Part shown: positions 958 through 47,399 of the stretch, piece by piece
Layout of the letters: the number at the start of each line of letters is the position of its first letter
Numbering within the stretch: position 1 is the stretch's first letter
Sequence record: PQ182779.1
Direction: 5' to 3' (one strand)
DNA length: 64,000 nucleotides
The notes under the pieces: model-generated
The model's input: the letters and a program-made list of their open reading frames with translations, nothing else
Database searches by the model: none
What the model was told of the DNA's origin: nothing
Position numbers and translations under genes: made by a program

Positions 958-2169
958 ATGTTTGACTTAGGCGTAGTAATCGGTAAATTCGCGCCCCTTA
1001 CGTTGGGGCACATCAACTTAATCACAGAGGCTGCTGTGCAGTCTAAGCATGTCCTCGTTATTCTTTCCCACGACCAACGTTGGCTGGATAAACAATCGCC
1101 ACGAGACCAAAAGGTACTCAACTTCAAAAATCGTCTGCGCTGGCTGCAACAGACTTACGCGGATACAGAGCACGTCACGATCGATTTCATTGACGAGGCT
1201 TCTGTACCGGAATACCCGAACGGTTGGAAAGAATACGCTGCTCTGCTCGGCGCTAAGATTTTCAACGAGGCGGGTAGACTGGCAGCTAACCACAGCCAGG
1301 CGCAGAGCATTGCTATTTTCAGTAGCGAGCTAGATTACGATGAAAAATACAAAACGCACCTCGGTTTTGTAGAACATGTCATTGTTGACAGTAACCGTAC
1401 CCGCGTCCCCATCTCTGCGACCATGATCCGTGAAAACCTTTACGACCATTGGGAATATCTCCCGAGCATTGTCCGTAAAGATTATTGTTTGCGGGTGGTG
1501 GTATTAGGTGTTGAGAGTTCTGGGAAAAGTTCCCTCGTCAAGAACCTTGCGAAACTCTACAATACCAGCTGGGTTGAAGAGTACGGGCGTACGTACTGTG
1601 AAACGGTCTTGGCTGGTTCGGAAGCGACTCTCCGTAGTTCTGACTACCCGTTGATTGCGTATCGTCACAAAGAGCTGGAGGAAGAAGCATTACGTACTTC
1701 TAATCGACTCTGTTTCATCGATACGAACGCCTTCATTACGGAATATTACCATCGACTGTACGAGGGTAAACCTAACCCTATTGTTTCTGCTATCGCGGCT
1801 GAAGAGCATTACGATCTCGTATTAGTTCTTTCGCCGGAAGTACCATGGGTTGATGACGGTCTGCGGTTGAACCCTGACCGCGAGAAAACAGAGAGTCTTT
1901 TCCAGCAAATGCTTCGGGAATTTAAAAACCAAATTCCTCGTTATCGTACAGTCTACATTACAGGAGACTCGTACAAAAGACGGTTAGATCAAGCTCGAGC
2001 AGCTGTAGATCAATTGTTGGCGTTTAACGAAGGGTTTAAAGGATGGGATCCACTAAGGGAAGGTGTACCCGGCAAACTTCAACCTGCACCGGCCGGTGAG
2101 TCCTTTGAATCTGACCCTGCATGGATGGCGGTGGAAAGTGTTGAAGCTAAATACTCCATCAATAATTGA
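958..2169 (+). CDS. nadR: NadR-like bifunctional NMN adenylyltransferase / nicotinamide riboside kinase, no HTH repressor domain
   Basis: GKFAPLTLGH (HIGH-like) nucleotidyltransferase domain, ISATMIRE motif, Walker A GVESSGKS, EYGRTY, FIDTN, PWVDDGLR. Confidence 0.93.
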   Translation: MFDLGVVIGKFAPLTLGHINLITEAAVQSKHVLVILSHDQRWLDKQSPRDQKVLNFKNRLRWLQQTYADTEHVTIDFIDEASVPEYPNGWKEYAALLGAKIFNEAGRLAANHSQAQSIAIFSSELDYDEKYKTHLGFVEHVIVDSNRTRVPISATMIRENLYDHWEYLPSIVRKDYCLRVVVLGVESSGKSSLVKNLAKLYNTSWVEEYGRTYCETVLAGSEATLRSSDYPLIAYRHKELEEEALRTSNRLCFIDTNAFITEYYHRLYEGKPNPIVSAIAAEEHYDLVLVLSPEVPWVDDGLRLNPDREKTESLFQQMLREFKNQIPRYRTVYITGDSYKRRLDQARAAVDQLLAFNEGFKGWDPLREGVPGKLQPAPAGESFESDPAWMAVESVEAKYSINN

Positions 2170-2591: not shown

Positions 2592-3062
2592 ATGAAAATT
2601 TCTGAATTAAATACTTTTTTCCGTAAAACTGGACTTTTCCAAAGCGGTGGGCTAGTGATCATCAAAACGATCAATGAAACCGGCCAGGCCGGCGTTGCAC
2701 AAAAGATAGCCGGACTATTCTGCAAAGATGGGGAAGCACCAGAAGATATTCATTTTACCCTGAGCCCTACCTGCGATAACAAAGAAGCTGTGATGAAAAC
2801 ACTCCGCGAAATTCGAGATATCGCCAGAAATAGCGGGGCCATTATGTTTTATCATGAGTCGATGAACAAGAATCGTTTCCCTGATGACGTCGATGGGTAT
2901 TTCAGCAGATACCATACATCGCTGCGCATCGACAACGAAGCTGATATGTCTGTTTTCGTTTATGAGGACGTAGACGGAATCAGTATCTTCATTGATAAGT
3001 TCCGCACCCTGAATCCTTACATCGGCGCATATACCCTTCGCCGTATTAAAATTGAGGAATAA
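2592..3062 (+). CDS. hypothetical protein, possibly degenerate RecA-like fold
   Basis: SD GAGGA; C-terminal AD..V...I.I.KFR pattern. Confidence 0.65.
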   Translation: MKISELNTFFRKTGLFQSGGLVIIKTINETGQAGVAQKIAGLFCKDGEAPEDIHFTLSPTCDNKEAVMKTLREIRDIARNSGAIMFYHESMNKNRFPDDVDGYFSRYHTSLRIDNEADMSVFVYEDVDGISIFIDKFRTLNPYIGAYTLRRIKIEE

Positions 3063-3065
3063 TAA

Positions 3066-3755
3066 ATGAACTCATTGGTAATGAAAACTTTCACTGACTT
3101 TGCGCACTGGAAGAAAGTCGAATACTTTTGGCTGATCGTAGCGTTAATCGTCGTCGGATTGGGGAGCTGGCAAGCCAGTCCGTTAGAATTCACGGCAGCG
3201 CTAACCAACGTTGTCTGCGTGATTCTGGTGGCGAAGGGTCGCGTCTCTAATTATTACTGGGGGACGATTGGTGTAATTACCTACGGTATTGTTTCGTACA
3301 ATACCGGCCTTTATGCCAATGCGGCGTTGAACGCTATTTACCTTCCAATGCAGTTTATCGGTATTTATTACTGGACGAAAGACCTGGGCAAAACTCCAGC
3401 CAAAGCTGACGTAGCGGTTAAAACGATCACTTTACGTGACGTGATAACTTATCTGGTTGTTGGGGTTATCTTCTGGTATGGCCTGACCGAATACCTGAAA
3501 ACGACGCAGGATCCGTTTCCTGCCTTAGACGCATTCTGCTTAGTCGCATCGCTCATCGCCATGTGGATGATGATCAAGCAGCAGCCAGAGCAATGGATTC
3601 TCTGGATCATTATCAACTGCGTCACAATTTATCTGTGGGTGATCCCGGCACTTAATCAACCAGGTTCATGGGCGCAGGTGGCACAGTGGGCAGTATTCTT
3701 GATGAACGCGTTCTACGGTCTTTGGAAATGGTATATCACCAAAACCAATAAATGA
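3066..3755 (+). CDS. pnuC: nicotinamide riboside transporter PnuC
   Basis: Multi-TM; VILVAKGRVSNYYWG, GLYANAALNAIY.PMQFIG.Y.W, PFPALDAF, EQWILWIIIN, A.YGLWKW. Confidence 0.92.
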   Translation: MNSLVMKTFTDFAHWKKVEYFWLIVALIVVGLGSWQASPLEFTAALTNVVCVILVAKGRVSNYYWGTIGVITYGIVSYNTGLYANAALNAIYLPMQFIGIYYWTKDLGKTPAKADVAVKTITLRDVITYLVVGVIFWYGLTEYLKTTQDPFPALDAFCLVASLIAMWMMIKQQPEQWILWIIINCVTIYLWVIPALNQPGSWAQVAQWAVFLMNAFYGLWKWYITKTNK

Positions 3756-10158: not shown

Positions 10159-10850
10159 ACCAGAAACCGGAGTTCACTTTCTTTATTCAACGTTTAAAAA
10201 GGGATGAGGTTCATCTCCGTGACTTTTGGTCTGATGAAGAATGGGCTCCTCCGGGTACCTTTAAGCCCTACGGCTGGGTAGCGGGGATCGCTACCACTGA
10301 ATTCGTTTCTTACCTCGTTAATCACGGCGTAGACCCCCGTTTCTTCTGTCTGCTGAATAAATGGTTTCCGATGTCCATGGTCCGGTCAGATGAAGCCGAT
10401 ACCGCGGTACTGATTGATAAACTCACCGAGAAACTCTCGGCAGTACCTGAAGCGTTGATTGCGACGTATTGCGATCGGGTAGAAGAGTATTGTCAGGATG
10501 CCGTTAAACTGTATCGCGGACCGACGGATTCCTCTAACGGCGAAATGAATATTCTCCCGTTTAAAGGGACAGTTGAGTCCTTCTTAAACAACCCATTAAT
10601 CAACCCAGACAAACTAAAATCAATTGGGGAGAAAGCAGGGTGTCGGGTTCATTACAATATCGCCATTAATCGGCTTTCTGCGGAAGTGAACGTTGATCAT
10701 AAATTCTTTATTGACTTCGCTCCTGGCGAGAACGAATATTACATCAACATGCATCCTAGCTGGCCGCTTACCCTCCGAGACAATGAAGCGGTAAGCAAAA
10801 CGTTGGTGGCGGTAAACAACGCGTATAACGAGGTTAAAAATGCACACTGA
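10134..10850 (+). CDS. hypothetical protein
   Basis: SD GAGGA; overlaps both neighbours. Confidence 0.75.
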   Translation: MQLIERFLNQKPEFTFFIQRLKRDEVHLRDFWSDEEWAPPGTFKPYGWVAGIATTEFVSYLVNHGVDPRFFCLLNKWFPMSMVRSDEADTAVLIDKLTEKLSAVPEALIATYCDRVEEYCQDAVKLYRGPTDSSNGEMNILPFKGTVESFLNNPLINPDKLKSIGEKAGCRVHYNIAINRLSAEVNVDHKFFIDFAPGENEYYINMHPSWPLTLRDNEAVSKTLVAVNNAYNEVKNAH

Positions 10851-11568
10851 CTTTTCAAGCTTCTGGGCCACGTATGCGTTAGAGGATTTCAGCCCGATCT
10901 GGGGACGTCAATTCTTTAACCAGTACGGTAAAATCATGCAATGGGTAGAGGAGCAGAATATTAGCCGTCCGTACCACTCTACACGCCATTTAATTGGCGT
11001 AGGGGTACTGGTGAGTCACTTACTTTCAAATGTCAGCTTGACCTATTATAGGCTCACTGAGAAGGATCGTGAATCCGCTGTTATTGCTGGACTTCTTCAT
11101 GACTTCTGTCATCAAGGAGAAAAGAACGACTGGAAGAATATTGAACACGCGTTTCAACGCCTTGAGCAACTCGGGTTCTGGCGTCAATTTCCGACAGTAG
11201 ACAAAACGTTAGTCACGCTTTTGATCGGGTTCACGCATTACGACTTCGATGACCCATTCCCACAGTACCCTGGCGGGTCCGTATTGCGCTATTTGTTTGG
11301 CATCATTCGTGATGCTGACCAACTGTACGCAATGACCTATTTGGACGAAGAGATTTTCGATGGACTCTATCAGGAAATCGGGGTTCGTTTCGGACAGACC
11401 AGAGAAGAGTTTACAGAGCGAAACGTTCGATACATTAAAGGTCTTAACTTTTATACGGCAGTCGGCGCTGAGCACGTAGAAAAGTATAAAGAGACGGCTA
11501 TCAATAAGTGTCAACAATTTCTTTTGAATAAACAGGGGGATGAACATGAAACTGTTTCTGGCCAGTGA
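10840..11568 (+). CDS. HD-domain metal-dependent phosphohydrolase
   Basis: PYHSTRH...AGLLHDFCH...IIRDAD: H-HD-D signature. Confidence 0.8.
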   Translation: MHTDFSSFWATYALEDFSPIWGRQFFNQYGKIMQWVEEQNISRPYHSTRHLIGVGVLVSHLLSNVSLTYYRLTEKDRESAVIAGLLHDFCHQGEKNDWKNIEHAFQRLEQLGFWRQFPTVDKTLVTLLIGFTHYDFDDPFPQYPGGSVLRYLFGIIRDADQLYAMTYLDEEIFDGLYQEIGVRFGQTREEFTERNVRYIKGLNFYTAVGAEHVEKYKETAINKCQQFLLNKQGDEHETVSGQ

Positions 11569-12064
11569 GAAGTTTTACGATGTTCCCGATTCTCAGGAAG
11601 CAACTGTTCTTTTAATCATGGCACCGGACAAAGACGCTGCAATGAGAAACGCGACTTACAGTTGCTGCCCGGATGAACCGCGCTCTGTCTTGACGCCGAT
11701 GTTTGACATCTGGGAATTGGGGGACTTCGTTCCTCTTCCTGCCGTATGGGAAGGGCTGAAATATTATCCCGAAAATGAAACAGGCGGGGTGACAATTCTT
11801 ACCGGTTATGAGCCGGTTGAGTACAACGAGCTCGAGTCCGATTATCGTAGTATGCTTTATGCGAAATACAAAGCTGAAGCGACTGACCATAAAATGTTTG
11901 GGTACTACGACGACCTAAAAAAGAGCAGGGATCGTTTCTTTTCATTTACCGAGAAAGAGGACTGGGGTTATCGAGAAGAAGAACATCTCGGTTTTAAAGT
12001 ACCGGTTTGGGTGAGCCCTGCATGGAATATTTACATCAACAAGAGTGTTCATGTCAGTGAATAA
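11546..12064 (+). CDS. hypothetical protein
   Basis: SD GGGGG; overlapping gene chain. Confidence 0.7.
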   Translation: MKLFLASEKFYDVPDSQEATVLLIMAPDKDAAMRNATYSCCPDEPRSVLTPMFDIWELGDFVPLPAVWEGLKYYPENETGGVTILTGYEPVEYNELESDYRSMLYAKYKAEATDHKMFGYYDDLKKSRDRFFSFTEKEDWGYREEEHLGFKVPVWVSPAWNIYINKSVHVSE

Positions 12065-12620
12065 TCCGATTAAACTTTCTAAAACGTTGTGTTTCATTCT
12101 ACGTCATCGTCCTCAGGCTTTGAAATTAACGCCTGATGAACTTGGCTATGTCAGACTCGACGACCTGATTGCAGCATTCTCTGAACAGAATAAGTCAGTT
12201 ACGTTACAGGAAATTATGCACGTTGTAGAGACGGACGATAAGAAACGATTTGGGTTATCCGATGATCTTTCTTCTATCCGTGCTGTACAGGGACATTCAT
12301 TCCCAGTAAGTGAAATGGCCTTCAATGAAGAGGTACCGCCTGAGGTACTTTACCACGGCACTGCATCGGGGAATTTAGAGAGCATTTTTCAGGAAGGGTT
12401 AACGCCGGGGTCGCGTCAGTTCGTTCATTTAACTGACCACATTGAGACCGCGCGTTTAGTGGGTATACGGTACGCTAAGAAAGGGTCGCTCGTAGTCTTG
12501 AGTATTGATACCCAGAAACTATTGGAACGCGGCTACGTGTTCTACAAAGCGTTGAACGGGGTTTGGCTGGTCGAACATGTTCCGGTAGGTTGTTTCAAAA
12601 TAGAGGAGAAAAAAGAATGA
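12051..12620 (+). CDS. kptA: RNA 2'-phosphotransferase Tpt1/KptA (NAD+-dependent)
   Basis: LSKTLCFILRH.P, DKKRF, IRAVQGHS, LYHGT, RQFVHL, NGVWLVEHVP. Confidence 0.93.
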   Translation: MSVNNPIKLSKTLCFILRHRPQALKLTPDELGYVRLDDLIAAFSEQNKSVTLQEIMHVVETDDKKRFGLSDDLSSIRAVQGHSFPVSEMAFNEEVPPEVLYHGTASGNLESIFQEGLTPGSRQFVHLTDHIETARLVGIRYAKKGSLVVLSIDTQKLLERGYVFYKALNGVWLVEHVPVGCFKIEEKKE

Positions 12621-18774: not shown

Positions 18775-19248
18775 ATGACCTATACCGAAATTAAAGGGGA
18801 TTTGATTGAAGCTTTCTTTAATAAGGAAGTCGACGTCATTGCCCACCAAGTAAACTGTTTTGGGATTGCAAAGAGCGGTATCGCCGTTAAGATCTTCGAA
18901 GTCTTTCCCTGGATAGCCGAGCCTTACTTTGCCGACAAACGCCCTGTCAAAAACAGATTGGGGAAATTAACCGCCGCCAAAAAGGATGAGCAGTGGGGTT
19001 TCAATCTTTGTGGCCAATTTCACCACGACCATTCAGATCCAGGATATAAAACGCATTATAGCGCACAGTATCTGGCGATGAAAATAATGGCCTCGATTCT
19101 CAAAAAGGAAGAGAAACCGTTAAAGGTGGGTTTTCCTTTAATCGGATGCGGGCTGGCCGGTGGTGATTGGGAAATGGTCCGCCAAAATATTGAGCGGGCT
19201 TTTAAGGATACCAATCTTGAAATCATTGTTTATCGGTTCGAGGGTTAA
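18775..19248 (+). CDS. macrodomain protein (short Poa1p/TARG1/DarG-like class)
   Basis: IKGDLIE, VIAHQVNC.G....GIA, FPLIGCGLAGGDW. Confidence 0.88.
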   Translation: MTYTEIKGDLIEAFFNKEVDVIAHQVNCFGIAKSGIAVKIFEVFPWIAEPYFADKRPVKNRLGKLTAAKKDEQWGFNLCGQFHHDHSDPGYKTHYSAQYLAMKIMASILKKEEKPLKVGFPLIGCGLAGGDWEMVRQNIERAFKDTNLEIIVYRFEG

Positions 19249-40969: not shown

Positions 40970-43528
40970 TTAGAGGTAGTTTAACTTAATGTACGTCATT
41001 GTAAAACCAAAATATGACGTACCTGTTAAATCGCTACCTTTTAAAAATACCGCTTGTGACGGCCAATAACCACTACCGAATCTCACGTAATATTTATTGT
41101 CATCACCTTTCAAAATTTGCACCGAGGTAGGAACAAAACCCGCAGCGGCTGTCGCGCTAGGAAGGAACCGGTAAAGATTAAAAATAGGCGCGTACGGACC
41201 GACATGTTTATCTTGAATCGTCAATAGTGGCGTAGGAAAAAGATCCAAGGGGAAATATAAAGTCCCCGTGTAAGGGGCGGTATTGTTGGGAAGTTGAAGT
41301 AGGACGTTTATCGTGAACTTACTTCGTTCTTCTTCGGTATTTATAAGATAACTAATAGGCGAAAAAGTCGAAGATCCGTCCGTAACTCCATTGCCTAAAA
41401 GTATAGTCTTCCCAGAATACTGATCCCCAGAGAAAGCGAGGCTCGTAAAAAACTTCTCGCGGTTATCAGCAGCTGGCGTTCCTGATGTCCTGAATGTTAA
41501 TGGGTTAGTGTAATTACGGTCATTAAAACAACGTAACATGACCTCGACATTACCACTACTATCAGAAGCCATAAAGTCAGCAGCAGGAGTTCCGTTGAAA
41601 TCCGACATTTTTGGAGAAACTGCAAACTGTGTAAGTCTTCCATTTGTCCCGAAAACTCCGAGGGAAGAACCTTTAGCCACGATACTGTTTACAGGCGAGC
41701 ATTTTTGGACAGACATAATACCTTGAATAGCCAATCCAGGCGCTGATGTATAAAGCGTCGCATTGACAGATTCATAAGGGAACACTACGTTCCAATTGTT
41801 CTGTGGCATCGTATAAAAATCATTGCTTACGGTAGCCCCAGATGAATTAGTTACCGTTTTAGATGTAGTGGAAGTATCATAATACGGTGTTCTTTCAACG
41901 TAGGCATAGTGTATGTTTCCGTACATGATTTTATCCCCTGTATCCGGGGTAAGGATGGGTATACGATGTGAGCCATAAATTTTGACTCTTAAAATTTCAT
42001 TGCCCTGATTGTCCCTTGGATGACGCATGAAATCAACGAACGCCCTTGACGCAACTCCGCGATATAAGAGAGAGGCATACTTCGCATAGGCGTCACTTGT
42101 CAGGTCCTGTAAGGTGCTGGACAACCTTCCGGTACCACCATCCGATGTTTTAATCGTATTAGCACTTTTGTAAAAGTACGTATCGAAGAAATTATCAATT
42201 TTTTCCCAGATAGACCCAGCGTCCCATTTACCTAATGGCGGGTTAAAGAATAATTCTTTTATACTTAAGAAATCTGTCCAACCCAAGGATTGAATATCTC
42301 CACCAGACGAAGGGTACGGCGGTAACGCGGTTCCCGGATAAGCCCCGCCGTTCCTTTGCAGCCACCACCCGCCAGAAACCAGTCCACAATAAGACGCTTT
42401 AATGGAAAGATATTCGATTTTTGATAAGTCAATACCTTGAAAAAGCGCACAATATGCGCACTGCTCAAAACCAACTCTACCCCAATCAAAGAACTGACTA
42501 ATCCCATCGGATATGTAACCAATGAATGCCGACTTAATAGTGAAACCGTTAAAATTGTTTCTCGTCACTCCGCCATACATTCTGTTTTTACTACCTAAAG
42601 CAGCGACGTATGTTCCATCCCACCCTTTCACTCTCCCAACAATAGCTACTGATTGCTGAGTGTTAACGGTGCTTTTATCCCAACCGAACGTAATGGAATT
42701 ACTACTAATATCTTTAGAGGTAATGTTAATTCCGTAAGGCAGGCTAATGTGAATTGACATTTTTATTTGTTCTTCTGACGGAAGAACACTGTCTAGCCCT
42801 TGTGCGATTAACGCAGCCCTTGAAGGAGATAATGTACCATCATCGAATGGAAGAATCCATCCGGTGTCATCCGTAGAGGTGATCAAATAGTTCCCGATGA
42901 AAGAGACTTCTGATCTGGCTAACCTTACTGCGGCTTTGATAGCATTTCTAAAGGCTGGACCTGAGTCATAAGTACTATTAACCGAAACGTCAACAGCCCC
43001 AAAATCAACAGGGTCGACATAATCTTTATCGTTAACCCTTTCCCAATAGTACCCATTGCCTGCGGCAATGTACCCGCCATCATCAGTCGCAGTACCTTTT
43101 CTGCCGATAAAAATTCCGCCGCCTTTAATTGACCCGGTATTCCATCCGACTAACTTAACCTCTTGGCCTTCGTAGATTACGGGCAAATTTCGGAGGGCGG
43201 CAAAACTCCCTATCTCTTTAATGAAAAGTGCGGCGATGTTTTGTTGTAGTTTACCGTACGCATCAAAGACAGCTAGACTATAGTGCGTTTCTACTGAGAG
43301 AGTAATGACGTTTCCGGAACTGTCCATCGGCAGTCCATTACTGTCTAGCGCAATGGGTTGAGAAATAGAGGATGTAGTCCCATCTGCTTTCAGTGCAGTT
43401 ACAGGTAATTGATTGCTTAACACCGTGGGGTCAGTATTAATCTTACCGATATACAAAGAGCCTGAGTTAGCTACCCTTCCGCTATCAATCAATCTAAACT
43501 GATTGGATGGCATCGAAATAATATTCAT
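40970..43528 (-). CDS. tailspike/depolymerase-like protein with P22-type head-binding N-terminal domain
   Basis: N-term GSLYIGKINTDPTVLSNQLPV...ISQPIALDSNG...YSLAVFDAYGK matches the P22 tailspike head-binding pattern; then tailspike linker FAALR...GGGIF...DDGG...GNGYYWER and VDPVDFGA. Confidence 0.8.
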   Translation of the reverse strand: MNIISMPSNQFRLIDSGRVANSGSLYIGKINTDPTVLSNQLPVTALKADGTTSSISQPIALDSNGLPMDSSGNVITLSVETHYSLAVFDAYGKLQQNIAALFIKEIGSFAALRNLPVIYEGQEVKLVGWNTGSIKGGGIFIGRKGTATDDGGYIAAGNGYYWERVNDKDYVDPVDFGAVDVSVNSTYDSGPAFRNAIKAAVRLARSEVSFIGNYLITSTDDTGWILPFDDGTLSPSRAALIAQGLDSVLPSEEQIKMSIHISLPYGINITSKDISSNSITFGWDKSTVNTQQSVAIVGRVKGWDGTYVAALGSKNRMYGGVTRNNFNGFTIKSAFIGYISDGISQFFDWGRVGFEQCAYCALFQGIDLSKIEYLSIKASYCGLVSGGWWLQRNGGAYPGTALPPYPSSGGDIQSLGWTDFLSIKELFFNPPLGKWDAGSIWEKIDNFFDTYFYKSANTIKTSDGGTGRLSSTLQDLTSDAYAKYASLLYRGVASRAFVDFMRHPRDNQGNEILRVKIYGSHRIPILTPDTGDKIMYGNIHYAYVERTPYYDTSTTSKTVTNSSGATVSNDFYTMPQNNWNVVFPYESVNATLYTSAPGLAIQGIMSVQKCSPVNSIVAKGSSLGVFGTNGRLTQFAVSPKMSDFNGTPAADFMASDSSGNVEVMLRCFNDRNYTNPLTFRTSGTPAADNREKFFTSLAFSGDQYSGKTILLGNGVTDGSSTFSPISYLINTEEERSKFTINVLLQLPNNTAPYTGTLYFPLDLFPTPLLTIQDKHVGPYAPIFNLYRFLPSATAAAGFVPTSVQILKGDDNKYYVRFGSGYWPSQAVFLKGSDLTGTSYFGFTMTYIKLNYL

Positions 43529-44265: not shown

Positions 44266-45129
44266 ATGTTTAAAGTTACGTTTGATGACCAACCGGTCCT
44301 TTATGAGAATATGACTTTTCCGGGTGGCGAGGAACATATCACAATTAACCGTCATGGGCTACCGCCCCATGATATCGGCGTTGTTAAAATAGAAGGAAGT
44401 ATCAAATCTTCCACCGAGGCAGTGCGTCTACTGTTACTGGTCGACGCTATTCGTCGTATTGGGAAATACACTGCGAAAACAGAACTCCATTTAGTTGTGC
44501 CTTATTTCCCGTACGCGCGACAAGACCGTGTCTGTAATGCAGGCGAATCGTTTTCACTCGGCGTTTTTGCTGAACTGTTCAACAGCCTGAAAGCAGACCG
44601 AGTGTTGATACACGATCCGCACTCTAACGTTACTCCGGCACTGATCAAAAACCTCGTCGTCCTGGAACAGTCCAAAATTGTCTACAATTTATTGGCTAAT
44701 TGGATTCGGGAAAATAACGTCGTATTAGTCTCCCCTGACGGTGGTGCGGCGAAGAAAACTGAAGAGTTGGCAAAACTACTCGGCGGGGTGCCTATCGTTT
44801 ACGCAAACAAAAAGCGCGATACTAAAACCGGCAACATTCTCGACATTACGTTATTGGACAATGACAATATCGAAGGTCGTAATTTGTTGGTTGTCGACGA
44901 CATCTGCGATGGTGGGTGGACTTTCACTGAACTGGCGAAAAAACTCAATACCCAAAACCCGAAATCGCTCAGTCTCTTCGTGACCCATGGAATTTTTTCT
45001 AAGGGCCTGGGCGAACTCTCTATCGCATTTGATCAGATTTTCTCAACCAACGTGTGGTGGGAAAATATCACTGACGACGGGTTACCAACCCAATCTTATT
45101 TAACTGCTAAAGATGGACGCGTGAAATGA
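44266..45129 (+). CDS. prs: ribose-phosphate pyrophosphokinase-like protein (candidate ADPR-PP synthetase Adps of NARP1)
   Basis: FPGGEEH, PYFPYARQDR, DPHS, VSPDGGA, K.RD..TG, VVDDICDGGWTF, VTHGIFSKG. Confidence 0.9.
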   Translation: MFKVTFDDQPVLYENMTFPGGEEHITINRHGLPPHDIGVVKIEGSIKSSTEAVRLLLLVDAIRRIGKYTAKTELHLVVPYFPYARQDRVCNAGESFSLGVFAELFNSLKADRVLIHDPHSNVTPALIKNLVVLEQSKIVYNLLANWIRENNVVLVSPDGGAAKKTEELAKLLGGVPIVYANKKRDTKTGNILDITLLDNDNIEGRNLLVVDDICDGGWTFTELAKKLNTQNPKSLSLFVTHGIFSKGLGELSIAFDQIFSTNVWWENITDDGLPTQSYLTAKDGRVK

Positions 45130-46883
45130 CCAATCCTTTACTGAAAGACCCAAAATTCTATACCGAAGATCCGCTGGTATTCCTGCTCTGCGATGCCTAT
45201 AAAACCGGGCACATCAACCAACAACCGTTGGGTACTGACAGCTTCTTTGAAAACCTGACGGCCAGAAGTCACACGTACTTCAATACCCCACTGGACTTTG
45301 ACGGTTCTGTATTCATGGGTCTACAGCGTTTAGTACTCCGCTGGTTGGTAGGGAGTTTTGATAACTTCTTCAAAACACCGTTTAATCAGGTAGAGGCTGA
45401 ATACCTCGAATACATGGACGGGGTTCTGGGTAAAGGCGTGGTGAAATCGGCGCATCTGAAGGAGCTGCACGAACTGGGCTATATCCCGCTCGAAATCCGC
45501 GCGGTACCAGAGGGTTCGTTGGTACCTATCCGTGTTCCATTCCTGACGATTGAAAATACCGTCGACGGCTTTGGGTGGCTGACCGGTTACTTCGAAGACC
45601 TCTGGAGTAACGAACTCTGGAAACCGTGCGTACTGGCAACGAAAGCGTTACACTTCCGCCGTGTACTGGAGCAGTACGCTAACGAGACGGGGGCGGCGCA
45701 AGCGTTCATTGACTACCAGGCACATAACTTCGCGTTACGTGGAATGTCGGGGATGTTTGACGATGCGAACAGCTCGGTAGGTCAGTTGATCTATTTCAAA
45801 GGGAGTGACAGTTTCCCTTCGGTCTGGACTGCGAATCGCTTCTATAATCCGGAAGGAGACGTATCGGTCTCGGAAATCGCAAATTCTGTACCGGCCACAG
45901 AACACAGCGTAACCTGTCTGAATATTGCGGTTTACGCAGAGGAACTGAAGGCGACCCCTGAATACGCTAATGTCACAGAAGCGGAGTTACTCTCGAAGGC
46001 GGAGGAATTATTCCAACGACGCCTGATCACGGAAGTTTACCCTTCTGGCGTTTTCAGCTTCGTCAGTGATACGAATGACTTCTTTGACACCATCACCACC
46101 AAGGCCATTGCAAACAAAGATGCGATTATGGCGCGTGACGGTAAACTGGTCTATCGCCCAGATTCCGGGAACCCGTATCATATCCTCTGTGGATACACCT
46201 GGGACGGCGATAATCACAATTCCCAAGAGATGACCGTTTTAGGGGGAGCTTCTGCTTTAGATGCTACGAAATTTGTCGCGATTCAAAATGCTACGTCTGG
46301 TAATTTCGAATCTTTCTGTGTTGATGGTCAATTCTATTCGACTAAAACAGGGAAACCTATTTCTATCGAAGAGCAGAAGGGTGCAGTACAGATACTCTGG
46401 GAAATCTTCGGCGGAACCACAAATGCCGCTGGGTATAAAGAACTGGATTCTCATGTCGGCCTGATCTATGGCGATGCGATCAACATCAACACCATGACGC
46501 GGATCCTTTCTCGTTTGAAAGCGAATGGGTTCTGTAGTTCCAACGTGGTCTTTGGTGTGGGCAGTTTCGAATTCCAGTTTGTTACCCGTGACACCCTGGG
46601 TATCGCTATGAAGGCGACCGCTGGTAAGGTTAAAGGTAAACATTACTCCATCGCGAAAAACCCGAAAACCGATGACGGCACCAAGAAATCGGCAAAAGGT
46701 TACCTGATCGTTGCGAAGGGCGAGAACGGAAAACTCGAACTGCGTGATAACCTGACCCGTGAAGAGTATGAAGCGCTTCGTGGTAGTGAGGTTGACGCGA
46801 TGCGGACTGTGTACCTGAACGGCGACGTGAAAGTACTGGAAAGTCTTCGTACTATTCGTCAACGTGCGACGCAGTGGTTGTAA
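45126..46883 (+). CDS. nadV: nicotinamide phosphoribosyltransferase-like protein (candidate Namat of NARP1)
   Basis: DAYKTGH, HNFALRG, SVPATEHSV, VSDT.D, RPDSGNP, LIYGDAI, NVVFGVGSF, TRDTLG.AMKAT, KNPKTDDGTKKSAKG; ATGA overlap with prs-like gene. Confidence 0.92.
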   Translation: MTNPLLKDPKFYTEDPLVFLLCDAYKTGHINQQPLGTDSFFENLTARSHTYFNTPLDFDGSVFMGLQRLVLRWLVGSFDNFFKTPFNQVEAEYLEYMDGVLGKGVVKSAHLKELHELGYIPLEIRAVPEGSLVPIRVPFLTIENTVDGFGWLTGYFEDLWSNELWKPCVLATKALHFRRVLEQYANETGAAQAFIDYQAHNFALRGMSGMFDDANSSVGQLIYFKGSDSFPSVWTANRFYNPEGDVSVSEIANSVPATEHSVTCLNIAVYAEELKATPEYANVTEAELLSKAEELFQRRLITEVYPSGVFSFVSDTNDFFDTITTKAIANKDAIMARDGKLVYRPDSGNPYHILCGYTWDGDNHNSQEMTVLGGASALDATKFVAIQNATSGNFESFCVDGQFYSTKTGKPISIEEQKGAVQILWEIFGGTTNAAGYKELDSHVGLIYGDAININTMTRILSRLKANGFCSSNVVFGVGSFEFQFVTRDTLGIAMKATAGKVKGKHYSIAKNPKTDDGTKKSAKGYLIVAKGENGKLELRDNLTREEYEALRGSEVDAMRTVYLNGDVKVLESLRTIRQRATQWL

Positions 46884-46899
46884 TTTAAAGACATAACCT

Positions 46900-46934
46900 T
46901 TCCCTACAGCACCTGCGTGCTGTAGGGAATTATG
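46900..46934 (+). other. 13-bp hairpin followed by TATG
   Basis: TTCCCTACAGCAC-CTGC-GTGCTGTAGGGAA-T-TATG. Confidence 0.7.
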
Positions 46935-46965: not shown

Positions 46966-47027
46966 CAAGATAGTTGAATGTATTAAATTCGATTTCATTT
47001 TTGTCAGTCTACTATAGGAGAAATACA

Positions 47028-47399
47028 ATGAAACTTTATTCTAAAGAAGAATTTCTTAAATTGCCTTCCGGGACACTTTTTGTATTTGGACCGGTGGATT
47101 GGACGGAGGGGCAACTAGAGCCGGGTTATCTAGCTCTAAATGTTAAATACGAATCGCTACGCGATGACTTTGTGTTTAGACCCTTAATTGACATTGAAGT
47201 CAGATCCTCAGAAGAACGAGATGAACTCAATGATTTCATCCAGGGGGAAATGAAAACGTGTGACATTTCCTCTGATATTCCCATGGATCTTTTCGCAACG
47301 AGCCGCGATGGCTTATTTGAAAAAGACTCGACCTACCTTGTTCTCAGTAATGAGGAACTGAAAGCAGTTATTGCCTCATTACAAATGTTAGTCAAATAA
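47028..47399 (+). CDS. phage hypothetical protein (MKxxxKEEFLKLPxGT family)
   Basis: ATG 47028 with SD AGGAG. Confidence 0.75.
   Translation: MKLYSKEEFLKLPSGTLFVFGPVDWTEGQLEPGYLALNVKYESLRDDFVFRPLIDIEVRSSEERDELNDFIQGEMKTCDISSDIPMDLFATSRDGLFEKDSTYLVLSNEELKAVIASLQMLVK

Follow-up and report, generated by a model that had tools for sequence, protein, structure and literature searches.

The 64,000-nucleotide window analyzed here, which begins at position 236817 of the 300.8-kb genome of the Klebsiella jumbo phage vB_kp_MJ359 (MJ359; GenBank accession number PQ182779.1), carries two adjoining plus-strand genes that very probably form an NARP1 module for the reconstitution of NAD+. The first, adps (ORF1; 44266..45129), encodes a Prs-like homolog of ADP-ribose pyrophosphate synthetase (Adps) of 287 amino acids (aa), and the second, namat (ORF2; 45126..46883), encodes a 585-aa, NAMPT-like homolog of nicotinamide ADP-ribose transferase (Namat). 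NARP1 is defined by an Adps-clade homolog of Prs, the phosphoribosyl pyrophosphate (PRPP) synthetase, next to a Namat-clade homolog of Nampt, the nicotinamide phosphoribosyltransferase; it was found in 859 of 20,185 phage genomes, and 97% of the Adps genes had a Namat neighbor (Osterman et al., bioRxiv 10.1101/2024.02.11.579819). Phylogeny and diagnostic sequence motifs assign the MJ359 pair to Adps and Namat rather than to Prs and Nampt. The substrates, products, and antidefense role of the two proteins are predicted by analogy with the homologs of SPbetaL1, Bas63, ICP1, Gary, and FADO. By that analogy, a host NADase (SIR2-HerA, DSR1/2, type I Thoeris, SEFIR, Kongming, or a similar system) would split NAD+ into ADP-ribose and nicotinamide. 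Adps would then form ADP-ribose pyrophosphate (ADPR-PP) by attaching the β,γ-pyrophosphate of ATP to the distal ribose of ADP-ribose, and Namat would exchange the pyrophosphate of ADPR-PP for nicotinamide, yielding NAD+ directly. The regenerated NAD+ would allow the phage to replicate.

The initial annotation described this locus as a PRPP synthetase homolog translationally coupled to a NAMPT homolog and proposed an NARP1-type function; the former is confirmed, and the latter is supported. A Prs-like gene adjoins a Nampt-like gene on one strand in one operon, which is the arrangement required of NARP1, and the start codon of namat overlaps the stop codon of adps in an ATGA at 45126..45129 (plus strand). 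The two reading frames coincide with the GenBank coding sequences kpMJ359_330 and kpMJ359_331, whose product names are "ribose-phosphate pyrophosphokinase" and "nicotinamide phosphoribosyl transferase," respectively. adps begins with an ATG at 44266, just preceded by AAAGGGG, and the gene junction is identical to that of Kuttervirus Se-G, with GRVK and the stop codon leading into the ATGA. ORF1 matches Pfam PF00156 (Pribosyltran) and PF13793 (Pribosyltran_N), PHROG 619 (E value, 2e-88), and TIGR01251 (131.6 bits), while ORF2 matches PF04095 (NAPRTase), PF18127 (NAMPT_N), PHROG 448 (E value, 1e-163), and NF006629 (417.6 bits); the E values exclude chance similarity. Both genes are under strong purifying selection, with ratios of nonsynonymous to synonymous divergence relative to the Klebsiella phages FBKp24 and KpLz-2_45 of 0.02 to 0.03 for ORF1 and about 0.08 for ORF2, which indicates that adps and namat are functional genes. 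Gene order and coupling, together with the clade positions of both proteins, the donor loop and C-terminal loss of ORF1, and the clamp motif of ORF2 described below, all point to the NARP1-type reading. As a separate observation, the profile of PHROG 12872 (547 positions) matches ORF1 over its first 222 positions and ORF2 over positions 258 to 537, which suggests that some phages have fused or chimeric Adps-Namat proteins or that gene calls were misjoined.

An alignment to characterized Adps and Namat proteins versus Prs and NadV, which the initial annotation had proposed as a check, shows by motifs and trees that ORF1 is of the Adps type and ORF2 is of the Namat type. For ORF1, a maximum-likelihood tree was built from a small sample of 12 Namat-linked Adps and 5 cellular Prs proteins, including the characterized or genetically tested Adps of SPbetaL1, FADO, Bas63 (a Felixounavirus; MZ501086), ICP1, and Gary. 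Adps and Prs are separated at 100/100 support, and ORF1 falls on the Adps side, where its sister is the protein of Kuttervirus Se-G (99/96); the starred group around these two also takes in ICP1, Gary, and the Justusliebigvirus VEcB. ORF1 is 52% identical to the Se-G protein, 37% to ICP1 Adps, 32% to Bas63 Adps, 27% to SPbetaL1 Adps, and 24% to Escherichia coli Prs. Of these proteins, the Adps of SPbetaL1 and that of Bas63 proved insoluble.

The PP (donor) loop of ORF1, DDICDGGWTF (44896..44925, plus strand), is of the Adps type. The corresponding loops are DDICDGAASF in ICP1 and DDICDGGRTF in Bas63, in contrast to DDMIDTGGTL in E. coli Prs. The Adps pattern is DD[IL][CST][DS][GFY]G..F, whereas that of cellular Prs is DD[MI][IV]D[TS][GA]GT[LI]; four of the five cellular Prs proteins fit the latter, and a divergent Rhizobium paralog does not. 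The loop is unchanged in FBKp24 and KpLz-2_45. ORF1 was thus rejected as a canonical Prs by its loop, reading CDGGWT at the site of the ribose-5-phosphate loop DT(G/A)GT. In an alignment of 11 sequences with E. coli Prs as the single Prs, Phe220 and Ile191 are found throughout the Adps proteins but not in Prs. Four of the five cellular Prs proteins in the tree set likewise have another residue, Leu or Ile, in place of Phe220. In addition, ORF1 ends about 25 to 30 residues short of Prs in the alignment (287 aa versus 311 to 330 aa), and the C-terminal α11-α12 module of Prs, which serves in filament formation and regulation, as judged from the alignment and not from a structure, is missing.

These features correspond to the Adps signature derived from the ICP1 structures, which consists of a Prs-derived acceptor groove, a remodeled PP/donor loop, the catalytic Lys185, and the consistent loss of α11-α12 (PMC13586617). 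ICP1 Adps, solved with ADP-ribose/ATP and with ADPR-PP/AMP (PMC13586617), resembles ORF1 in its DDICDG loop and truncated C terminus, and its Lys185, Phe18, Arg87, His121, Asp161, and Asp212/213 have equivalents in ORF1. It differs at Phe92, which is Cys90 in ORF1, at the lid residue Phe223, which is Glu222, and in the loop, where GAAS is replaced by GGWT. The codon of Lys182, the ORF1 equivalent of Lys185, lies at 44809..44811 (plus strand), and a K185A substitution in ICP1 Adps abolishes ADPR-PP formation (PMC13586617). The alignment shows that the catalytic and acceptor residues K182, H119, D158, D211, D212, D215, R85, and F18 are intact in ORF1. The conservation of Lys182 and the acceptor residues points to an active enzyme but not to its specificity, because Prs keeps these residues too.

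Curated protein models also set ORF1 apart from canonical Prs, which was rejected by this measure as well, as ORF1 fails every equivalog and narrow NCBIfam Prs model. It scores 103.5 on NF002320 (cutoff, 297; E. coli Prs, 532) and 107.7 on NF002095 (cutoff, 296), and the sole Prs model that it passes is the broad TIGR01251 (cutoff, 113). On that model, its 131.6 bits lie among the scores of ICP1 Adps (98), SPbetaL1 Adps (106), and Bas63 Adps (138), compared with 423 for E. coli Prs. The best sequence matches of ORF1 in the Protein Data Bank (PDB) are canonical Prs proteins at no more than 76 bits, in a copy of the PDB without ICP1 Adps structures.

For ORF2, a tree comparing 11 Adps-associated proteins with 7 Nampt proteins from phages and bacteria places the protein inside the Adps-associated Namat clade, with 100/100 support against Nampt, as sister to the protein of Erwinia phage Fifi106 (99/98) and then to that of Bas63 (100/99). 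Its best PDB sequence match is SPbetaL1 Namat (9w5x/9w5w; 391 bits), followed by Haemophilus ducreyi NadV (301 bits) and mammalian/human NAMPT (about 140 bits). An AlphaFold2 model of ORF2 (pLDDT, 91; pTM, 0.90) likewise has 9w5x as its best fold match (TMt, 0.93); the input alignment consisted of sequences from the protein search, and the model is of a monomer without ligand.

The Namat signature comprises the conserved Nampt catalytic core and a "selectivity clamp," the SCH motif of which has the consensus GS-X-φ1-X-φ2-X-φ3-TRD (PMC12774641). ORF2 carries the SCH motif GSFEFQFVTRD (G479 to D489; 46560..46592, plus strand), corresponding to the conserved half of the ADPR-PP selectivity clamp, with the two aromatic residues expected of Namat at positions 3 (F481) and 7 (F485). 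The equivalent segment in Nampt is GGGLLQxxxRD in the KVP40 type and GAQTYQRNTRD in H. ducreyi NadV. Among the 120 best homologs from a collection of 5.8 billion proteins, 118 have the motif GS...TRD, nearly all with an aromatic residue at position 3. In Namat, the SCL (β1-β2 loop), the variable half of the adenine clamp, supplies a third adenine-stacking residue, which is either the third loop residue (Arg, Lys, or Tyr) or the fourth. The loop of ORF2 reads S48-H49-T50-Y51-F52 (45267..45281, plus strand), with Thr in third place; the fourth residue, Tyr51, is aligned with Trp43 of Bas63, which is said to stack on the adenine in a Bas63 model (PMC12774641), and may or may not take that role. 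The residues aligned with F189, R192, D215, R306, and D308 of the SPbetaL1 core and with the catalytic histidine are all intact in ORF2 (F202, R205, D228, R344, D346, and H260), as are the catalytic residues D23 and Y25. His260, the catalytic phosphorylated histidine of the Nampt/Namat fold, lies in an ATEHS motif (codon at 45903..45905, plus strand); A-T-E-H occurs in all Namat-clade sequences, versus A-R-E-H in KVP40-type Nampt.

Two general measures were rejected as criteria for telling Namat from Nampt. NF006629 gives no separation, scoring 594 for SPbetaL1 Namat, 507 for KVP40-type NadV, 693 for Ralstonia Nampt, and 418 for ORF2. The closest PDB relative is not sufficient on its own, as H. 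ducreyi NadV, a real Nampt, ranks second. NadV is fairly close overall, much closer to the Namat clade than mammalian NAMPT is, and yet lacks the aromatics at positions 3 and 7, so it is the motif, and not overall similarity, that separates the functions. In this bona fide bacterial Nampt (PDB 9ke8/9keo), Gln and Arg replace the two adenine-stacking aromatics, and it looks useful as a natural control for the clamp hypothesis.

ORF2 has two insertions relative to SPbetaL1 Namat, and both are ordered in the AlphaFold2 model. Insertion 1 (aa 268 to 290; 45927..45995, plus strand) is helical in the model and is common to Bas63, Fifi106, and VEcB. Insertion 2 (aa 357 to 404; 46194..46337, plus strand) is a small α/β subdomain by alignment and model, and its site is also occupied in Bas63, Se-G, PAK_P1, VEcB, and Fifi106. 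Since both sites are filled in Bas63 Namat (593 aa) and in other Namats of Gram-negative phages, they represent no departure from the family. Insertion 2 is hypervariable among the sister phages; KpLz-2_45 has an unrelated sequence there, longer by 8 aa, between conserved flanks. A metagenomic Namat relative (903 aa; 91% identical) has a 318-aa intein-like insertion between Ala257 and Thr258, 2 residues ahead of the catalytic histidine, which starts with Cys and ends with Gly-Asn before the Thr; a Pfam search (E value below 0.01) found no Hint or endonuclease domain in it.

The finding belongs to known biology, as orthologs of the pair are already tabulated as NARP1. Twelve other Klebsiella jumbo phage records, among them FBKp24, KpLz-2_45, Centimanus, LPKP23, and entries named "Serratia phage Kp…," match the 2.9 kb around the pair at 89 to 91%. 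Tables S1 and S2 of Osterman et al. list MW394391_00203/204 (FBKp24), MN871446_00358/359 (KpLz-2_45), and MN871447_00088/89 (KpLz_1_41) and label these pairs as "Adps-associated" Namat and Namat-linked Adps. The FBKp24 and KpLz-2_45 orthologs are 96 to 99% (Adps) and 86 to 96% (Namat) identical to those of MJ359. The pairs of vB_KpM_FBKp24 (Maaswegvirus) and KpLz-2_45 (Siatvirus) share with MJ359 a dihydrofolate reductase (DHFR)-adps-namat context and the ATGA overlap, and the diagnostic motifs of both agree with those of MJ359 except for F485Y in the SCH of KpLz-2_45 (GSFEFQYVTRD).

The NARP1 modules of Bas63 (bas63_0079/0080) and SPbetaL1 (Namat structures 9w5w and 9w5x) have the same gene order and subfamilies as MJ359, and they share its SCH clamp motif, catalytic core, and Adps-type donor loop; Bas63 Namat also has both ORF2 insertions. 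The MJ359 pair is 32% (Adps) and 43% (Namat) identical to that of Bas63 and 27% and 44% identical to that of SPbetaL1, and its ATGA junction contrasts with a 45-nucleotide gap in Bas63. The NARP2 pathway of KVP40, which consists of the Nampt NadV and the NMN adenylyltransferase (NMNAT; NMN being nicotinamide mononucleotide) NatV, shares the Nampt/Namat fold, and an NMNAT is also encoded in the MJ359 genome. However, NARP2 has no Prs-like partner, its NadV-type Nampt prefers PRPP, and NadV has GGGLLQQLDRD where ORF2 carries the aromatic clamp. NARP2 membership was rejected, as ORF2 is kept off the Nampt side of the tree (100/100) and an Adps gene is present.

Several points weigh against the NARP1 assignment or temper it. 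The trees of both proteins include few sequences, and the nearest tested homologs, outside the jumbo phage group, are just 32 to 44% identical to the MJ359 proteins. The majority of the Adps residues that contact ADP-ribose are kept in Prs too and do not discriminate between them. Unlike the Bas63 and SPbetaL1 proteins, ORF2 has Glu at φ1 of the SCH, where Thr or Ser is usual, and Thr as the third SCL residue, where Arg, Lys, or Tyr is usual; the φ1 Glu is common to 13 database sequences and marks the jumbo phage group of MJ359. Lastly, Namat retains PRPP-dependent NMN formation in vitro (PMC12774641), so that a minor side flux of NMN into an NMNAT may be possible. Even with these points, an NARP1 module is the reading in which we have high confidence.

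The initial annotation also noted an NMN adenylyltransferase (NadR) gene and, on that ground, considered a classical route from PRPP through NMN to NAD+; the gene is present, and its relationships point to a separate pathway. The NadR-like protein (958..2169, plus strand) combines a cytidylyltransferase-like NMNAT domain (PF01467) with an AAA_28/ribosylnicotinamide kinase (RNK) domain (PF13521), has no helix-turn-helix (HTH) domain, matches PDB 9x6f at 482 bits, and is 62% identical to an Epseptimavirus homolog. About 900 bp downstream of it lies a gene for a PnuC-like nicotinamide riboside transporter (3066..3755, plus strand; PF04973, E value of 3e-43), which is 48% identical to the Epseptimavirus PnuC whose gene directly adjoins the NadR-like gene there. 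In NARP3, the architecture is a NadR-like and PnuC-like pair (Bas30_86 and Bas30_87; PMC13464706), and the MJ359 proteins have the same domain makeup, that is, NMNAT and RNK without an HTH, plus a PnuC transporter. Strict adjacency is lacking: two ORFs without family matches (2178-2579 and 2592-3062) intervene in MJ359, in contrast to the Epseptimavirus pair, and the MJ359 NadR-like protein is extended by about 45 aa at its C terminus. By analogy, these two genes would constitute a separate, already described NARP3-like pathway, a second and independent NAD+ supply from imported nicotinamide riboside. As the NadR-like gene has its own partner and substrate, it gives no reason to assume that ORF1 and ORF2 work by way of PRPP and NMN. 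NARP1 and a NadR-like gene are also combined in Aeromonas phage AhSzw-1.

The window also encodes a Macro-domain "phosphatase" (18775..19248, plus strand; 157 aa; PHROG 335, E value of 8e-41) that is a homolog of Adpp and possibly linked to the pair in function. Its match to the Pfam Macro model is weak (17.8 bits, under the 22-bit cutoff). Its identity is 40% with the Macro protein encoded in the NARP1 operon of PAK_P1 (E value, 1e-29) and 33% with the Adpp of Vibrio phage Gary (E value, 3e-21). The PAK_P1 protein is listed as NARP1 associated, and Gary Adpp is a biochemically validated ADPR-1''-phosphate phosphatase (aRES preprint 2026). Homologs of all three components of the Gary NARP1-AP operon (Adps-Adpp-Namat; aRES preprint 2026) are thus encoded by MJ359, and the MJ359 Macro protein and Gary Adpp have the motifs AHQxNCF and PLIGCGLAGGDW in common. 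Unlike in Gary, the MJ359 Macro gene lies 25 kb away, out of the operon and outside the definition of ±2 genes, as the aRES preprint counted only genes no more than 2 positions from NARP1; the sister phages are not in its Macro table. With Pfam and PHROGs, neither the upstream DHFR gene nor any of the five genes that follow the pair was recognized as Macro/RyR type, a search that did not cover the tail spike gene two positions upstream (40970-43528, minus strand). NARP1-AP by the published definition was rejected, as no Macro gene was found among these neighbors of the pair, leaving core NARP1. That the distant Macro protein serves NARP1 is put forward as a hypothesis; the phosphatase would convert ADPR-1''-phosphate, produced by aRES-type RES NADases or by a phage Tpt1, into ADP-ribose for NARP1. 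tblastn matches of the Macro protein extend to about 2,800 phage records, T4-like phages among them. Further genes of the window encode an HD-type phosphohydrolase (10840-11568; Pfam) and a Tpt1/KptA RNA 2'-phosphotransferase (12051-12620; PF01885, E value of 2e-43). The reaction of Tpt1/KptA uses NAD+ and yields an ADP-ribose cyclic phosphate, from which ADP-ribose could be recovered.

These neighboring functions give rise to three other explanations of the pair. In a classical, NARP2-like salvage, ORF1 would supply PRPP as a true synthetase, ORF2 would form NMN as a true Nampt, and the NadR-like NMNAT would complete NAD+ from this NMN. The generic Prs and Nampt names of the Pfam, PHROG, and NCBIfam families, the presence of an NMNAT in the genome, and the formation of NMN from PRPP by Namat enzymes in vitro would all fit this scheme. 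We nevertheless regard it as very unlikely. ORF1 has neither the DT(G/A)GT loop nor the C terminus of Prs, scores under the equivalog cutoffs for Prs, and groups with Adps in the tree, and SPbetaL1 Adps yielded no product in a PRPP synthetase activity test (Osterman et al.). The tree sets ORF2 apart from Nampt, and the protein has the adenine clamp. The NMNAT shares a polypeptide with a ribosylnicotinamide kinase and is encoded near a PnuC, with 62% and 48% identities to an NARP3 pair, and Bas63 NARP1 is functional in a host lacking pncC and nadR (Osterman et al.). A milder version keeps NARP1 as the main function and adds cross talk, in which NMN from the residual activity of Namat and NMN from nicotinamide riboside would both be adenylylated by the NadR-like protein in one network. 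Without ADPR-PP, SPbetaL1 Namat is about half as fast as human Nampt in forming NMN (PMC12774641), and the NadR-like, PnuC-like, Adps, and Namat genes are all conserved in roughly 13 sister phages, a combination that AhSzw-1 in part repeats with its NARP1 and NadR-like genes. Yet only NAD+ was formed when SPbetaL1 Namat was offered both donors (Osterman et al.), the two MJ359 modules are 41 kb apart with no sign of coregulation, and NARP1 in the absence of a defense system gave no excess NAD+ (Osterman et al.), so cross talk appears unlikely.

The remaining explanation concerns housekeeping, in that the pair would recover NAD+ used by the phage's own enzymes, such as Tpt1/KptA, whose product a cyclic phosphodiesterase and a Macro phosphatase can turn into ADP-ribose. 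It draws on the Tpt1, HD phosphohydrolase, and Adpp-like Macro genes of the window and on the yeast homolog Poa1p, which works downstream of Tpt1. However, the NAD+ use of tRNA repair is stoichiometric and small beside NADase-driven depletion, and in every tested phage, an NARP1 deletion had a phenotype on defense-carrying hosts only. As the purpose of the pair, this recycling is very improbable, and it is compatible with, rather than exclusive of, the antidefense NARP1 module that we favor.

In the MJ359/FBKp24/KpLz group, these genes may make up three stacked NAD+-restoring layers, namely, NARP1, an unlinked Adpp-type Macro protein feeding it, and a split NARP3-like NadR/PnuC pair. We propose this arrangement tentatively and consider it rather less probable than its absence.

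The two genes of the module differ in their nearest relatives, which are Kuttervirus Se-G for Adps and the Ounavirinae (Fifi106 and Bas63) for Namat. Approximately unbiased (AU) tests reject concordance in both directions, with a P value of 0.0006 for Adps placed with Fifi106 and Bas63 and 0.0002 for Namat placed with Se-G. The synonymous divergence between MJ359 and KpLz-2_45 is 0.17 for adps and 1.0 for namat, and that between MJ359 and FBKp24 is 0.87 for adps and 0.33 for namat, so that the divergence of these adjacent genes differs up to 6-fold among sister jumbo phages. A several-fold gap between the two genes points to recombination, by which the NARP1 module has evidently been reshuffled. 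A sliding-window search found no sharp recombination breakpoint within namat.

A hairpin with a perfect, GC-rich 13-bp stem and a 4-nucleotide loop (46900..46929, plus strand; -25.2 kcal/mol; z score, -5.7) starts 17 nucleotides past the namat stop codon and possibly marks the end of the operon as a terminator, a role that would be only inferred, as the hairpin lacks a U tract. In promoter and terminator scans around the operon, it alone stands out, and nothing else exceeds the shuffled expectation; a promoter-like site downstream of it (47001-47029) is not above chance overall.

The MJ359 pair adds nothing new to NARP1 itself, which is already catalogued. The new leads are small and consist of the unlinked Adpp homolog, with its dispersed three-layer arrangement, and of the discordant ancestry of the NARP1 genes. 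None of the protein collections or GenBank entries consulted names the homologs Adps or Namat; they appear as Prs or as Nampt/NAPRTase throughout, those of the characterized phages included. Read as GenBank, PHROGs, Pfam, and NCBIfam label them, the genes would seem to serve nucleotide or NMN metabolism, and a counterdefense function stays hidden. For Klebsiella phage therapy, the content of NARP1, NARP3-like, and Adpp-like genes would predict which defenses a phage tolerates, such as SIR2-HerA, DSR, Thoeris, and possibly aRES. If the distant Macro protein does feed NARP1, rules based on ±2 genes undercount NARP1-AP, and large phages would hold dispersed, multiroute NAD+ economies.

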